Positions 20,522 to 28,486 of a stretch of 64,000 nucleotides of DNA are shown piece by piece. The DNA comes from Piromyces finnis finn (taxonomy: Eukaryota; Fungi; Neocallimastigomycota). The position numbers were made by a program, and so were the translations under genes. The DNA lies in contig MCFH01000021.1 of NCBI GenBank assembly GCA_002104945.1, positions 682,001 to 746,000 of the forward strand, given 5' to 3'. Positions within the stretch are counted from its first letter, which is position 1, and each line of letters begins with the position of its first letter. The notes below the pieces were generated by a model. It saw only the letters and a list, made by a program, of their open reading frames with translations. It ran no database searches and was not told the DNA's origin.

Positions 20522-23193
20522 ATTCATTAACTTATATTAGAAAGAAATTTAAAAATTTTCAACCTTCTTTTTTTTATTTTTCTAAAAAGATTTTAAACTT
20601 TAGTCAGTATAAAATAAATTATAAAATTGATTATTTATTTTTTCATTATATATTTACAATAAAGATAATATTAAATAAAAATAATTAAAAATTAAAAATA
20701 AATATTAAGGTAATGAGTGTTGAATATTTTTTATAGATATACATTTTTATTATTTATAAAGCTACTCATAATACAAAAAAAATAGAAAAAAAAAAAAAAA
20801 AATAAAATTGATGATTGAATATTTATTTTTAAAAAATAGTATTATAAATTTTACAGGAAATAATAAAAAAACAAATATAAAAATTAATGAGAAACTTTTT
20901 CTATATAGATTTTTATTTTATCTTCTTTCTAATTAAACAACTTTTTAAACTTTGTTATTTCAGATAAATAGAATATATCTTTTATTAATTAAAAAAAAAA
21001 AAAAAAAAAAAACGAATTATTCAATTTAATTTATTTTTAACTTAAATTTTAACAATTTTATGGTTAACTAAATATTTGATATTCTGATACATTAATAAAT
21101 AAAAAAACATTGAACTGTTAAAAAATATTTATAAAATAGAAATAGAAATAGTTGTAATTTATTAAGTAAGCTATTATTCTTTTTTAAAGTGCTTTTTTTT
21201 TTTAATGTTTTCTTTTGAGAAATTATTTTATGGTAATTAAAATATTTATTTTTTAAGAATTTTTGTGCTTTATATTAAATTAAATTTTAACTTTAAAAGG
21301 TATTGCATGTTTAATATAAAAAGTTTAAATATTAATAAAAATAATTTTAGATTTTGAAATTTAATTTAATAAATTTAATGTAATATATTTTGATAATATA
21401 TTATGATTATATTCAAAAAACTTTAAATTGGAATGATAATACTAAATTTGTTTGGTATAAAGTTTTATAGTATAGGATAAGATATCAAATATATTTTTAT
21501 TATTATTATCATCATCATCATAAAAATAAAACAAAAAGTTCACATATTTGTGTAAATTCAAAATTTAAAAGTATTGTGTGTTATATAATTGATATTATAT
21601 ATTTTTTAAAAAATATTCAAAGTTCCAGAATTGCGTTAATTATATACATTTTAAAAAAAAAATATTAATACTATCAAAAAGAATTAATAAAAAATTATGA
21701 CCAATTAATTTTTCTATTCATTTTAATAATAAATAAAATTTTAACCCTTAACTTAATAATGATAAATATTTTTTTTGTTTCAATTGATTAAATAATATAT
21801 TATAATATATTCTAAATAATATAAGATTAATTTCAAGTTTTCTATTTATAATATAATAAATATTATTATATTATTAATTATATTTCGTAAGATTACCCTA
21901 AAAAAATATATTTTATTATTTTTAAATAAATCTATTATTAAAATTAAATAATGATGCTATTATTTAAAAAAAAAAAAAAAAAAAAACGTATTATATAAAA
22001 TAAAATTTCATTATTATTTTTTTTAAAATTTAATTTTAAAATTTATTAAATTTAATAACTGTCTAAAAAAATATTTATATTTTTTTATACTTTTCCTTTC
22101 TTTTCCATTACCTTTTTTTTTTTATAATTCAAAACATTAACTAAAAATTATAAATAAATTTATATAAAAAAAAATTAATATAACATTAGGAATAACATTA
22201 AAAATCTCGTATACAGGGAATAATCAATTTAAAATTAAAAGATTGAAAGGAATATTAATTGTTAATTAAAACACTAAAAATAATAAAGCAACGAAGCATT
22301 CCTTTTTTTTTTTTTTTTAACTAAATTTAAGAATAAACCAAGGATTAAGAAAAAAAAAAAACATATAATTCCAATAAATTAATAATTAAGAAAATAAAAT
22401 AATTCTATTTATTGAAAAATATAATATTTTAATATTTTTCAATATGCCTAAAGAATTATAAAGCTTAGTTTTTCAAAGGAAAAGTTGTTTTTCTTTTCTA
22501 AATGACATCAATAAGTTTACAAGCTAATAATATTTTAATGAAAATATAATCAAAATAATTGATTATAATTAAAAATAATATAAAAACTATTTTTTAATAA
22601 CGATTCACAATTCATTTATATTGCCTTTTTTAATTAAAATCAAAAGAAAGTTTTTTTTTCTTTTAAATGAAATAACAAAATTAAAATATATTTCATATAA
22701 AATTTAAATCCAGCTTTTAAAAAATTATATTAACAATTATGAAATCATGAAAAATAATTTTTTATTATATCTTAAATAATAATTTAAATTTAAAGAAGAT
22801 AAATTTTATATAAACAAAAATTATTTATAATAATTGAATTTAATTTGCACAAAATATTAACTTTAAAAACAAGCCATTTCACAAATTTAAAAATTAATAG
22901 CTTAATAATAAATAATTAAATAACAATTGTAAATATATATGTATATGAAATTACTTATGTATAAATTATAAAAATAAAGAATTAGCTATTCAAAAATTTG
23001 AAATTCATAATTACTAAAAGAATAAAAACAAGATATATATCATATAGTCATATAGTATTATTATATTTTAAATAAAGGAAAGCATATATATATATAAAAG
23101 AAAAATAAAATTAAATCCAAATTTAAAGAAGTTAAAATAATTTAAAATTTAATTATTTAACAAAGTGTAATTTAATTAAATAATATTACAAAA

Positions 23194-25609
23194 ATGAAAA
23201 TGACTAATAATAACGATGCTATTGGTATTGTATCAAATACATTATATAGTAATTATATGCACACGTAATAATACAATATTTATATAAATATTTGTTTTTT
23301 TTTTTATTTGCTTTTTATAATAGGAAATGGTGAAGGTGGTGGAACAATAAAAAATAAAATATCGAATTCTAACTCAAGCCAAATAAATCAATCAATTGTA
23401 AAATTATTATCTTCTAATAATAGTTCTCCGTCATCATTACCAATAATGAAATCATCTTCAATAACTTATGTAACCTCAGAAACTACAACATCTTCATTAA
23501 TTAATTCAACATTAACTCCAAATCAGATTATAAATAATGTTGAAAATGAAATTATCAAAAGAGATAGTAATGATATTAAAAGTGCAAACCAAATTAAATA
23601 TGATGAAAGTTTTAGTATAACCAATGGTATTAACAAAGCAACACAGTATAATAAAAGTCCAAAACATACAACAAGAAGTAATAGTACTCATAGTTTAGAT
23701 GAATATTATTCTTCTTCACCTATTCCTACTCCAAAAGCACGTTCAATAACTAAATCAAACACCATTCCATTACCATCATATTCATTCAACACAAATAATA
23801 GTTCAAATTCTTCATTAAGTAACATAGATGAATGTTTAAATGAATATGGATATTTTTATTCCGAGGAAGAGTTGGATACATATAAAAACGTTGCTAACTT
23901 TATTTGCAAAATAGCACAATTAATTCTTCGTTCTCGTGTTGGTCTTAGTTATAATCATAATTATAACATCAAAATAAATAAGAAAAATAAGAATAAAGAA
24001 ACTCCAATTGATAAAAATAGTAGTTCTTTAAATTCATGTACAAATTCATTTTCAAATATGTGTATTGAGGCTACTTATGCATCATCTATATCATCTAATG
24101 AATCACAAACTCAATTTATTCCTTATTCTTTAAATTCCTCTTATAATTCATCTTTTGATAACTCATATACTTCAACCAAGATATTAAATTCTATGAATTC
24201 TTTTAATAGGGACAATAATTTTCATATACCAACACCTTCAATTGATAACATTAAACAATTACATAATCTACTTATAGACCGTATACCATTTTGGAAAAAT
24301 CGTATTCCCATAAATATTGATATTTTTGCAAACAAATGTGATTATGGTAAAAAAGGAAATGAAGGTTACAGAAGAAGAAGTAATGAATACAGTTATAGTA
24401 ATGATTTAGATAAAGATTATGAGAGTAGTTTTAATAAAGTGAGTGATTTTCAATCATCATCAACAAGAGTTAGATCATCTTCAATATCAAATATATATCC
24501 TACATTTAAAAAGACGCCTTCAACTAGTTCATCAAACAAATTTAATAATAAACGCCTATTAGAACGTTGGGTAGTATCTTATGAATTAAATGATGAATTA
24601 GAATCAATAACTAAGGGAAGAAATTCAAAGATTGATACCACTGACTTTATTCTTTTAGTTCAGTCTCTCTATTCATATATTCGTTTAATGCCACTTCATT
24701 CCCTTCTCTCAGATAATTCAATTAAAAAAACTGATTTACAATATTGTATATCAACTGCAGATGGCTTTTTACTTTTACCGCTTCTTGAAGAACAAAATAA
24801 TGATATTGAATATTGCCACATTGGTTCGTCAGGTTTTGATCTTTCTGCAAAATTAAAAGTATATAAATTTAATAAAGCTTCCACAAATTTAGGAAATTTA
24901 AATATTTCAGTTGTATATGATGCTAATGTAAATAACAAAAATCCAGCAGTTTATCCTTCTAACTATTCACATATTCATTCTAAATCACTATCAACTATAT
25001 CTTCATCTTTTTTATGTAATGATACTAATCTTAATACACAAGCGTTTAATAAAGTTAATAGTAATCAGTTAAATATATCGAATTCATTATCTTCATGTGA
25101 TAAATCAATTTCAAAATCAAATAATGATTTAAATGATTCTTCTGTAAAAACTATTACTGTTGAGGATAAAACTTCTAAAGATAAGAAAGTAAATTTTAAT
25201 TATATAATTAAAAAAAAAAAAAAAACATGTATTTAATTATAAAATTTATTAATTATAAAATGATATAATTAAAATCAATTATTTTATTTATAGGACGAGA
25301 AATCTGATACCCCTACTGATGATGAATCATCTTCTCCTAATAGTAGAAGAAAATCATGTCCAACCATTGGTAGTCCATTTCCTAGTCCGAAAACTCATAC
25401 TAAAGTTTTGTCTTTAACACAGAATAAATATTCAAATCAAACACAGAATCCATTATTTTCTTCAACACCAAATTTAATTCATAAATTAGTTAACAAACAA
25501 CGTTTAGAAAAATATAGTAGTTCTGTTCACTCTTTATCCGATAACAATTCATTATCATCTCAATCAAATTTATTATTATCAGGATTTAATTATAAAAGTA
25601 TTAATTTAA

Positions 25610-25670
<61 letters not shown>

Positions 25671-27817
25671 ATTTTTTTTTAAATTAATAACATAAATATT
25701 CAATTTTACTAATATTTAAAACATATATGAAAATTAGAATCCAATGTGACGGATTTCAATAAAAATAAAATTTTAGGTCAAGAATCACCAAGTAATAAAA
25801 GCTTGTATCATTCATACCCTGCTCATTCAAATAGGAACAATAGTTATCAAAATAATTCAATGGAATTATTTGGTAGTTTAGTTGGATCATATGAGGTACA
25901 TTTCCTAGATAAATAAAATTTAATTCAATTTTTATATATTATGGGATATTAAAAAATTATTATAAAACGTTTTTATTTATTTATTTTTGTGATTTTTTTT
26001 AAATATTTGTATATTTTAGGAATCAATTCTTAGTGGTAGAATGTCAACTTTACCATCTAAACCAATTAAATTTATATCTGAAATTGGAGTTATAGGTTTT
26101 GGTAAATGCCATCCTCGTTTGAAATGCCCACCACATATTAATATTACTTTCCCGGTATATTTTTATGAAATTCCAGATCAAAATGATTTTTTTACGACAC
26201 CTTATGTTGGTACAGTAGATATTGAACAATATCTTCAAAAACAATATTTAATAAAACAACAAAAATTGCAACAAAAACAGCAAGAAAGTCAATCTATATC
26301 ATTAAAAGATGAACCAGAAGAAAAATTGAATATTGACCAAACTACTACAGAGTCAGTAATATTAACATCAATGAATAAAGTAGAGAATGAAAATCAAAAT
26401 AATAAGAATAATTCATTAATTCCATCATCTACTATTCTGTTGAATAATGAACCAATGTTAGCACGAACCTCATCTTCTAGTTCTCTTAATGGTTTAAGTT
26501 CTAAATTTCCTGGTTACCGTATTCCTTATAAAGGACAAATTCAAGTGGTAAAATCAAATTTTTTATATTATTTTAACTTTTTCAATATTAATAACATTAA
26601 TTTGTTTTTATTAATATTTTATACATTTATTTATTTAGATCATTAAAAATCCAAGTAAAACAGCTGTTAAAGTATTTCTTATACCATATGATTTCCATGA
26701 TATGCCACCAAATTCCAAAACATTTATTCGTCAAAAATCATATTTAAAGGATAGTAGAAATCCAAAAGACCCAAAATCATCATTAAGATATGCAATTCAG
26801 TTACAGTTTGTGTCGCCATCAAAAAAGAGATTATATCTTTGTAAAACATTAAGGGTAGTATTTGCTCATAAAGCTCCAGAGAAAGATGAAAAGCTTTATA
26901 CTATTTCTGATGGACCTATTAATCCAAAGTACATACCAATAGTAGATATAAACAATAAAAATTATAGTCAGAATTCAAACGACTATAGTCAAGAAAAGTT
27001 CATTGGTGGTACCAAATCAATAATGAAACCCAATGAAAAAGGATCTTCTATTTCAAAGGATGAAAGTAATGTTTTTTCATCCTCTTATTCTTCAAGACGC
27101 CGTAGTAGTTTTGGTTCAAATATGATGATGTTGGCAGAAATGGGTGTTAATTTAGGAGACTATAGTGTTTCACCTGTTAAGCCTATTTTAATACATCAGC
27201 ATCGTCAAACAACATCAGGTGGAAATTATAGTAGTATAAATAGTGGTAGTTATGTAAGTAATAATTTGAATGGATTAGGTATATATACACCAACGACTTC
27301 CACTACTTCTACTAAAATTACAAAACCACTTTACTTTAAAGGAAATTCACCTAATGTGTGTCCATTTGATATCCATAAGCGTAATGACCCCAAAGATATT
27401 TCACAAGAGGACATTAATCTTGTTCAACCACCCTTACCATACTTTTCTAATTCATCAAAAACCTTAAAATATTTGCATACTCATCAATATTCCTATTTAT
27501 CTAAAAACCTTGAACATCTTTCAAATAAACTTCCACCTAAAGCTGAAGAATCTATTATAGGTACATCTTATGATTTATCTAATCCAAATTATTCCTCAGG
27601 TGGTTTAACAAAGAGTGTTAATGATATTGAAGAGGAAGACTACTATTCAAAATCCTCTAAATCTACAACTGGACTCTCTAACTTCACTACAAAACGTTCT
27701 TTAAGAAAACTCACTGAATCTTCACTTAATGACGACAATACAGATAATGAGGGACGAGAGGAAGAATCTAATTCTTTATCATCCACACAATTGAAAGTTT
27801 TCAATTATATAAATTAA
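23194..27817 (+). CDS. ATOS: Atos/FAM214 homolog (DUF4210 + Chromosome_seg domains) with an N-terminal HORMA-like region; start codon uncertain
   Basis: LFGSLVGSYE|ESILSGRMSTLPSKPIKFISEIGVIGFGKC...LKCPPHINITFPVYFY (DUF4210). GYRIPYKGQIQV|IIKNPSKTAVKVFLIPYDFHDMPPNSKTFIRQK...LRYAIQLQF...LYLCKTLRVVF (Chromosome_seg). Internal exons join in phase; the first short exon 23194-23224 is tentative. Confidence 0.88.
25612..25669 (+). repeat. (TTA)n microsatellite in an ATOS intron
   Basis: Direct reading; explains the poly-Leu tail of ORF 25408..25671. Confidence 0.9.
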
Positions 27818-27879
27818 ATACTATTACTACTAATATATTATCTTGATATAAACATTTTTTATATATTCAACAATTTACT

Positions 27880-27900
27880 CCCTCCCTCCCTAAACCCCCC
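27880..27900 (-). other. Canonical G-quadruplex motif GGGGGG-TTTA-GGG-A-GGG-A-GGG (C-rich on the ATOS sense strand), just 3' of the ATOS stop codon
   Basis: Plus strand CCCTCCCTCCCTAAACCCCCC, 63 nt after the stop, in otherwise very AT-rich DNA. Confidence 0.6.
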
Positions 27901-28356
27901 TTTTTTTTTAATCTTTTTAAAGTATATTCAATAATTTTTATTAAATAACACGTTTCAGAAAATTGCCCAATTATTGTTATTTTTTTTAAAACTTTTTCTT
28001 TTTATTAGTCTTATTAAAAGTATATAGTATTTTTATGTATTTTTTTTTCTCATATTCTATCTTTTACATATACTACTTTTCTTATATTGAAAGATAAGAA
28101 GAATAAAAAAGAAAAACATTAGATAGTATTTCGTCTGTATATATATAAATAGTTATATAAATATACAAATATAAAAACTGATAAATATAAAAATGTTTTT
28201 ATATTAATAAATTTAATAGTAAATAAATCATTTATATATTTATATCATAATCTCTGTGTGTGTAATATCAACGGACAAAGGAAAATATTAATAAAATTTT
28301 CCACTTTTTATTTATTTAATTTTATGAAAAGATGCTATTAACTTTATAACTAAATG

Positions 28357-28486
<130 letters not shown>

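Follow-up and report, generated by a model that had tools for sequence, protein, structure and literature searches.

An N-terminal HORMA domain of ATG13 type in an Atos-family protein of the anaerobic fungus Piromyces finnis

The Atos-family gene of Piromyces finnis

The window analyzed here is a stretch of 64,000 nucleotides from the Piromyces finnis genome (56.46 Mb in 232 contigs), and positions refer to it unless a contig is named. On its forward strand, which carries the exons, domains and motifs described below, a gene of the Atos family occupies positions 23194..27817. The encoded protein, BCR36DRAFT_327208 (P0188; 1354 aa), bears the UniRef name 'Atos-like conserved domain-containing protein'. 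The NCBI model of this protein maps peptide by peptide onto the locus, with all introns delimited by GT..AG and the reading frame kept throughout, and the spliced protein used in this work is the database entry itself, which is identical to the spliced gene model. The six exons (23194-23224, 23324-25188, 25294-25597, 25738-25895, 26020-26547 and 26639-27817, stop codon included) total 4065 nt, corresponding to 1354 codons and a stop. The gene is present in a single copy, and it yields the sole match to PF13889 in the P. finnis genome.

Four small public sequencing runs (20-45 million letters, of a kind guessed to be RNA) contain between 0.46 and 0.85 of the words sampled from 23100-27900, and three of them fall at 0.81-0.85. 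Exons make up 0.847 of this span, and the share of words recovered thus fits the expectation for spliced mRNA of the Atos gene without amounting to proof. Long trinucleotide runs occur at two places in this part of the window: a (TTA)n run inside intron 3 (25600-25668) and an intergenic (AAT)n run downstream of the gene (28354-28485), which show up as poly-Leu and poly-Asn ORFs in the mechanical ORF list.

The C-terminal part of the protein, encoded by exons 4-6, consists of DUF4210 followed by Chromosome_seg, the two domains of the Atos module by which members of the Atos/FAM214 family are recognized. DUF4210 (PF13915) spans 25863..26220 and is split by intron 4 into segments 25863-25895 and 26020-26220; it is identified by Pfam on the exon-5 ORF with an E-value of 2.5e-19 and 69.9 bits (gathering cut-off 21.2), and residues 776-853 of P0188 match the local HMM. 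The Chromosome_seg module, made up of the PF13889 core and a conserved extension, spans 26500..26932 (26500-26547 and 26639-26932), with a Pfam E-value of 7.9e-20, a score of 71.2 bits against a cut-off of 22.9 and a match over residues 947-1060. In the AF2 model of a chytrid ortholog, both domains together form a single beta-rich domain.

A long disordered linker, rich in Ser, Pro and Asn, joins this module to the HORMA domain described in the next section. The linker contains a conserved short linear motif (IGSPFPSP...KVL...; 25366..25431): SPFPSP is part of the consensus of 41 full-length orthologs, and these show almost no variation in GSPFPSP or in the basic residue and VL that come after it. 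The motif may be a candidate site for proline-directed phosphorylation or docking. A role as a closure motif acting in cis on the HORMA domain of the same protein finds no support in the AF2 monomer of a full-length ortholog, in which GSPFPSP is not docked on the HORMA domain and stays disordered (pLDDT <50).

The initial annotation of this locus had proposed that the N-terminal domain and the Atos domains belong to one protein, and several lines of evidence confirm the fusion. Besides the single gene model of P. finnis, intron-free contigs of related gut fungi, metatranscriptome-like in nature, encode HORMA, DUF4210 and Chromosome_seg with no break in the reading frame; these include a contig of 3410 nt (L005), open from its 5' end, and one of 4366 nt coding for a protein of 1389 aa (P0187). 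The same three-domain architecture recurs in fungi whose genomes were annotated independently, dozens in all, encompassing Chytridiomycota, Neocallimastigomycota, Mucoromycota (Mortierellales, Umbelopsis and Mucorales) and Basidiobolus, with a partial match to the N-terminal domain in Hyaloraphidium. Some ortholog entries are odd: in the set P0229, P0190 and P0042, the name 'putative succinate dehydrogenase' is attached to an Atos homolog of Rosellinia, and a mitochondrial-carrier domain (PF00153) and a HET domain (PF06985) are found in the Ambispora and Physocladia models, respectively. P0229, P0190 and P0042 are probably misnamed or merged gene models.

The HORMA domain encoded in exon 2

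Inside exon 2, positions 23872..24936 code for residues 194-548 of P0188, and this segment is assigned to an ATG13-type HORMA domain with two low-complexity inserts by Pfam, by a profile derived from ATG13 proteins, by AF2 and by fold searches. The initial annotation had singled out a series of peptide blocks in this region and likened them to the conserved blocks of the Atg13 HORMA domain. The blocks do lie in one open frame, from 23881 (start of the first) to 24921 (end of the last), and the six that were quoted coincide with invariant columns of an alignment (A3) that includes 11 chytrid orthologs. Across Neocallimastigomycota and chytrids, 48 columns are invariant, among them those of the surface-forming alpha-C and C-terminal hairpin blocks. 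The resemblance to Atg13 is likewise upheld: Pfam PF10033 (ATG13), with a gathering cut-off of 25 bits, matches the exon-2 ORF with an E-value of 5.9e-10 and the segment 23872-24960 with an E-value of 5.2e-12 and 46.4 bits (exon-2 matches span 39.7-46.4 bits), and it scores above its cut-off in all 12 orthologs tested, including the 11 chytrid orthologs of alignment A3. P0188 reaches 63.6 bits with an HMM built exclusively from 40 true ATG13 HORMA domains and free of Atos sequences, and a compact ortholog (P0023) reaches 48.8 bits in a match that covers its entire HORMA domain.

When the search is reversed and a profile of the Atos N-terminal domain (Atos-N) is run against 1.84 billion representative proteins, fungal Atos proteins come first and are followed by ATG13 proteins confirmed by Pfam, at E-values from 1e-11 to 1e-4, with one fibronectin-repeat protein as a false positive. 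In a sequence search of solved structures, the match to S. pombe Atg13 is marginal (E-values of 0.05 and 0.01), human ATG13 is not reached, and a designed protein outscores S. pombe Atg13 by chance on the alpha-C block.

The fold was modeled with AF2 on 23872-24960, using alignment A3 as input. The HORMA core is predicted with a pLDDT of 85-95 in the conserved blocks and a pTM of 0.61, and the inserts are modeled as disorder. The model comprises three core helices (alpha-A, B and C), a beta-sheet with a beta-hairpin and a C-terminal safety-belt segment, the parts that make up a HORMA domain. A Foldseek search of the PDB with this model returns S. pombe Atg13 (4yk8_B) as its top match, followed by Mad2, Atg13/Atg101 and Rev7, and the matches of Foldseek and VIA are exclusively HORMA proteins, in good agreement with the ATG13-type fold that had been surmised from the peptide blocks.

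The elements of the domain can be followed along the exon. Helix alpha-A (23875..23937; block ...FICKIAQLILRSRV) takes up residues 2-22 of the modeled construct with a pLDDT of 85-94, and F10, I11, K13, L19, R20 and R22 are invariant in A3. It is followed by the first insert (23938..24237), some 100 Asn/Ser-rich residues with pLDDT <50 that fall in gap columns of the orthologs and are short or missing in those of chytrids. Helix alpha-B and the first strand of the beta-hairpin (24241..24333; block FWKNRIPINIDIF) are predicted at residues 124-143 and 147-154, with F140, W141, P146, N148, D150 and I151 as invariant residues. The second insert (24334..24549; about 72 aa, pLDDT <50) occupies the hairpin loop, and chytrid orthologs are without it; both inserts are lineage-specific and confined to loops. 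The second hairpin strand (24550..24588; residues 227-239) bears LLERWVVSY, the strongest motif in common with true ATG13; it lines up with LERW in S. pombe Atg13 and with ILLERW in the P. finnis ATG13. Helix alpha-C (24640..24711; block DFILLVQSLYSYIRLMPLH) is predicted at residues 257-280 with a pLDDT of about 90, and its columns are invariant or nearly so. The C-terminal strands (24736..24921; residues 289-295, 328-332 and 341-350) comprise DLQYCIS and then the FDLSAKLKVYKF / GNLNISVVY hairpin, and this safety-belt region is modeled in the position typical of closed HORMA domains.

Solely closed-state HORMA proteins align with the model over its full length, to about residue 190. The matches of p31comet, ATG101 and a bacterial HORMA truncated at its C-terminus are limited to the core, and those of ATG101 and of C-terminally truncated HORMAs extend to about residue 140. 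Since full-length alignment is restricted to closed-state proteins, the model is read as closed-type, like ATG13, and we infer that the Atos HORMA is modeled in a closed topology. As judged from the profiles and the predicted structure, residues 194-548 are a complete ATG13-type HORMA domain.

Relation to ATG13 and taxonomic range

The existence of a separate ATG13 gene had been named in advance as a check on the assignment, and such a gene is present. A canonical multi-exon ATG13 with the same series of motifs lies on another contig (C113:745432-746077; L001/L003), and the P. finnis genome encodes ATG101 as well (PF07855; C1:1892107-1892268; L004). A Mad2-type match to PF02301 is also found in this genome (C156:1258547-1259041). 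A maximum-likelihood tree of 26 Atos-N and 40 ATG13 domains places the two sets on either side of a single branch with an SH-aLRT of 100; the tree was built with a 'quick' method and is unrooted, and the taxon is unknown for most of its ATG13 rows. The Atos-N subtree roughly tracks the fungal phyla and is not nested within any ATG13 subgroup. A group of its own in the tree, an Atos module following the HORMA domain and a separate ATG13 in the same genome all set the protein apart from ATG13 orthologs. By these sequence comparisons, the Atos HORMA and the ATG13 HORMA are distinct paralogues; the former has been inherited vertically and is not the ATG13 of autophagy.

The initial annotation went further and suggested that Atos proteins in general are HORMA proteins retained from the opisthokont ancestor. 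This broader claim stands for early-diverging fungi, as the domain is found in the Atos proteins of chytrids, Neocallimastigomycota, Mucoromycota and Basidiobolus, and it fails for the Dikarya. The dikaryan Atos proteins tested, including those of Tuber, Pyronema, Saitoella, Mixia, Sporisorium, Exophiala and Podospora, have kept DUF4210 and Chromosome_seg, and the Atos-N HMM has zero matches in any of them; aligned by hhalign to the Atos-N profile, their N-termini reach a probability of 0.09%. From sequence, the HORMA domain appears to have been lost from the Atos proteins of the Dikarya, and the fact that these proteins dropped the domain and kept the Atos module means that the core function of Atos can do without the HORMA domain, which is accessory to it.

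For animals, the claim is backed indirectly, by fold clusters of chordates and by a weak collinear match in one mosquito protein. When the model from the window is used to search the ESM Atlas by fold, it retrieves a chordate cluster named 'Atos homolog protein A (Fragment)', aligned over 174 residues with an rmsd of 4.3, and a chordate cluster in which 46% of the members carry PF10033 and 12% carry PF13915. The one animal Atos protein examined by sequence, that of Anopheles nili (P0283; 1747 aa), came from searches that otherwise yielded fungal proteins; it contains DUF4210 and Chromosome_seg, and Pfam finds no match to PF10033 in it. The Atos-N and ATG13 profiles both pick the same segment of this protein, the hairpin block at about residues 320-375, and hhalign gives a P of 0.028 over 26 columns. 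With wider profiles, residues 271-480 score 12.0 and 14.3 bits, where the highest values among 2000 HMMER shuffles are 5.7 and 5.1, in a test made somewhat generous by the choice of the region after the first match. The nearest language-model clusters of residues 275-500 all carry PF10033, and by eye a collinear series of blocks possibly matching most of the fungal HORMA blocks can be made out at about residues 280-465.

These data bear on when the HORMA domain joined the Atos family. One explanation is that a duplicate of the ATG13 HORMA was recruited in the fungal stem, and that animal Atos proteins have no homologous domain. Some of the evidence favors such an early-fungal invention, since every named Atos protein matched in the exhaustive profile search is fungal, with no animal Atos among the best 150 matches, and since the mosquito protein is without PF10033 in Pfam and yields that short hhalign match. 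Nonetheless, the two chordate fold clusters, the PF10033-bearing language-model neighbors of the mosquito segment, its score of 12-14 bits against a shuffle maximum of 5.7 and the placement of the Atos-N group outside every ATG13 subgroup all speak against it, and we consider a fungal origin of the fusion rather unlikely. It is instead probable that animal Atos proteins keep a diverged HORMA domain, in which case the domain would date back to the opisthokont ancestor and would have been lost in the Dikarya.

To our knowledge, Atos/FAM214 proteins are almost uncharacterized, and a literature search returned no paper that relevantly joins them with HORMA or ATG13. The family has been the subject of a single functional paper (PMC9194793), which describes the DUF4210, Chr_Seg and transactivation domains of Drosophila Atossa together with its localization signals, and a HORMA domain is absent from that description. 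It calls these proteins nuclear regulators of mitochondrial energetics, with the boosting of OxPhos as the function in the fly, and reports that both mouse Atos paralogues rescue the fly atossa mutant (PMC9194793). On the other hand, precomputed Pfam annotation already places PF10033, PF13915 and PF13889 together on many fungal Atos members, and automatic UniRef/JGI names of some orthologs read 'Autophagy-related protein 13'. The initial view of the Atos HORMA as an overlooked domain thus holds for the literature searched and not for automatic annotation. The domain is undescribed in the literature searched, yet partly present in automatic annotation, and it is HORMA/ATG13-like rather than of a new kind.

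Possible roles and comparison with known HORMA systems

Taken as a whole, the locus is very likely an Atos gene of P. finnis whose product combines a paralogue of the ATG13-type HORMA domain, a linker and the Atos module. By analogy with ATG13, Mad2 and Rev7, the HORMA domain probably serves as a protein-protein interaction or recruitment module and would provide a tether or a gate for the C-terminal Atos effector module, with the disordered linker supplying phospho-regulation. Two modes of binding can be envisaged. The domain might dimerize with another HORMA domain, be it that of ATG101 or its own, or its safety belt might close over a short peptide supplied by a partner. ATG13 forms a heterodimer with ATG101 through alpha-C and its neighbors, with I131, R133, V134 and Y138 as hot spots in the human protein (PMC6070014). 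A functional partner-binding role for the Atos HORMA seems a reasonable expectation, if no firmer than that, and ATG101 as the partner, should the domain have this role, is a tentative suggestion.

Alternatively, the HORMA domain might be vestigial, its intact fold persisting as a scaffold or stabilizer with neither switching nor a dedicated partner. The Dikarya have dropped the domain and retain the Atos module, and the gut-fungus lineage tolerates two inserts of 70-100 aa, as might be expected of a domain of this sort. The 48 invariant columns, extending to the surface-forming alpha-C and C-terminal hairpin blocks, are difficult to reconcile with it, as are the conservation of the domain from chytrids to Mucoromycota, in a tree that roughly follows the phyla, and the restriction of the inserts to loops. 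A purely structural remnant is thus an improbable reading. Far less probable still is an artefact of annotation or assembly by which a true ATG13 was wrongly joined to a downstream Atos gene; the location of the HORMA and Atos parts in different exons would allow for it, but it was rejected, as the canonical ATG13 lies elsewhere in the genome, intron-free gut-fungus contigs hold the three domains in one frame and the fusion recurs across fungal genomes, and the introns of P. finnis are GT..AG with the frame kept. Chance resemblance, the least credible alternative, could be imagined in a window as AT-rich as this (12-28% G+C; 18-23% in the HORMA region, with its Asn/Ser runs), and is excluded by matches that lie in non-repetitive blocks, the Pfam score above gathering, the score of the ATG13-only HMM, a confidently predicted AF2 core and fold matches that are all HORMA proteins.

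A partner-binding HORMA in early-diverging fungi may also be seen in a wider frame, in which Atos/FAM214 proteins across the opisthokonts, human ATOSA included, would constitute an unrecognized HORMA family, an ancient paralogue of ATG13 that pairs with ATG101 or a closure motif and is perhaps remodeled by an ATPase of the TRIP13/Pch2 type. We put this forward as a speculative proposal, and one with considerable implications if true, for it would link conformational switching, and possibly autophagy or nutrient signaling, to the control of metabolic gene expression by Atos, and would mean that the Dikarya lost one layer of that control. More immediately, an N-terminal ATG13-type HORMA offers a concrete biochemical handle on Atos proteins, in the form of an ATG101-like or closure-motif partner and of TRIP13 dependence, and it hints at a connection between the toolkit of autophagy initiation and Atos function.

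HORMA domains are rare, and few families of them are known in eukaryotes, namely Mad2, p31comet, Rev7, the meiotic HORMADs, ATG13 and ATG101, each of them acting as a controlled assembly switch at a signaling junction. The closure-motif binders Mad2, Rev7 and HORMAD show just 8-15% sequence identity to the Atos HORMA, and Pfam PF02301 has no match on the domain. A generic HORMA of Mad2/Rev7 type was rejected.

With known Atos/FAM214 proteins, such as Drosophila Atossa and mouse AtosA/B, the P. finnis protein shares PF13915 and PF13889, in the same order and above their cut-offs. The role of Atossa in boosting OxPhos in the fly cannot apply as such in P. finnis, a hydrogenosome-bearing anaerobe, and the single intact Atos copy of an organism devoid of oxidative phosphorylation argues that the ancestral function of Atos was broader than this. 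ATG101 belongs to the HORMA proteins too and naturally dimerizes with ATG13, the closest relative of the Atos HORMA. With respect to ATG13 itself (PF10033; S. pombe 4YK8 chain B, L. thermotolerans 4J2G and human 5C50/8DO8), the Atos HORMA forms a separate paralogous group. In ATG13, the HORMA domain is followed by a disordered tail that binds ATG1/ULK1 and ATG17/FIP200; the Atos protein carries the Atos module instead.
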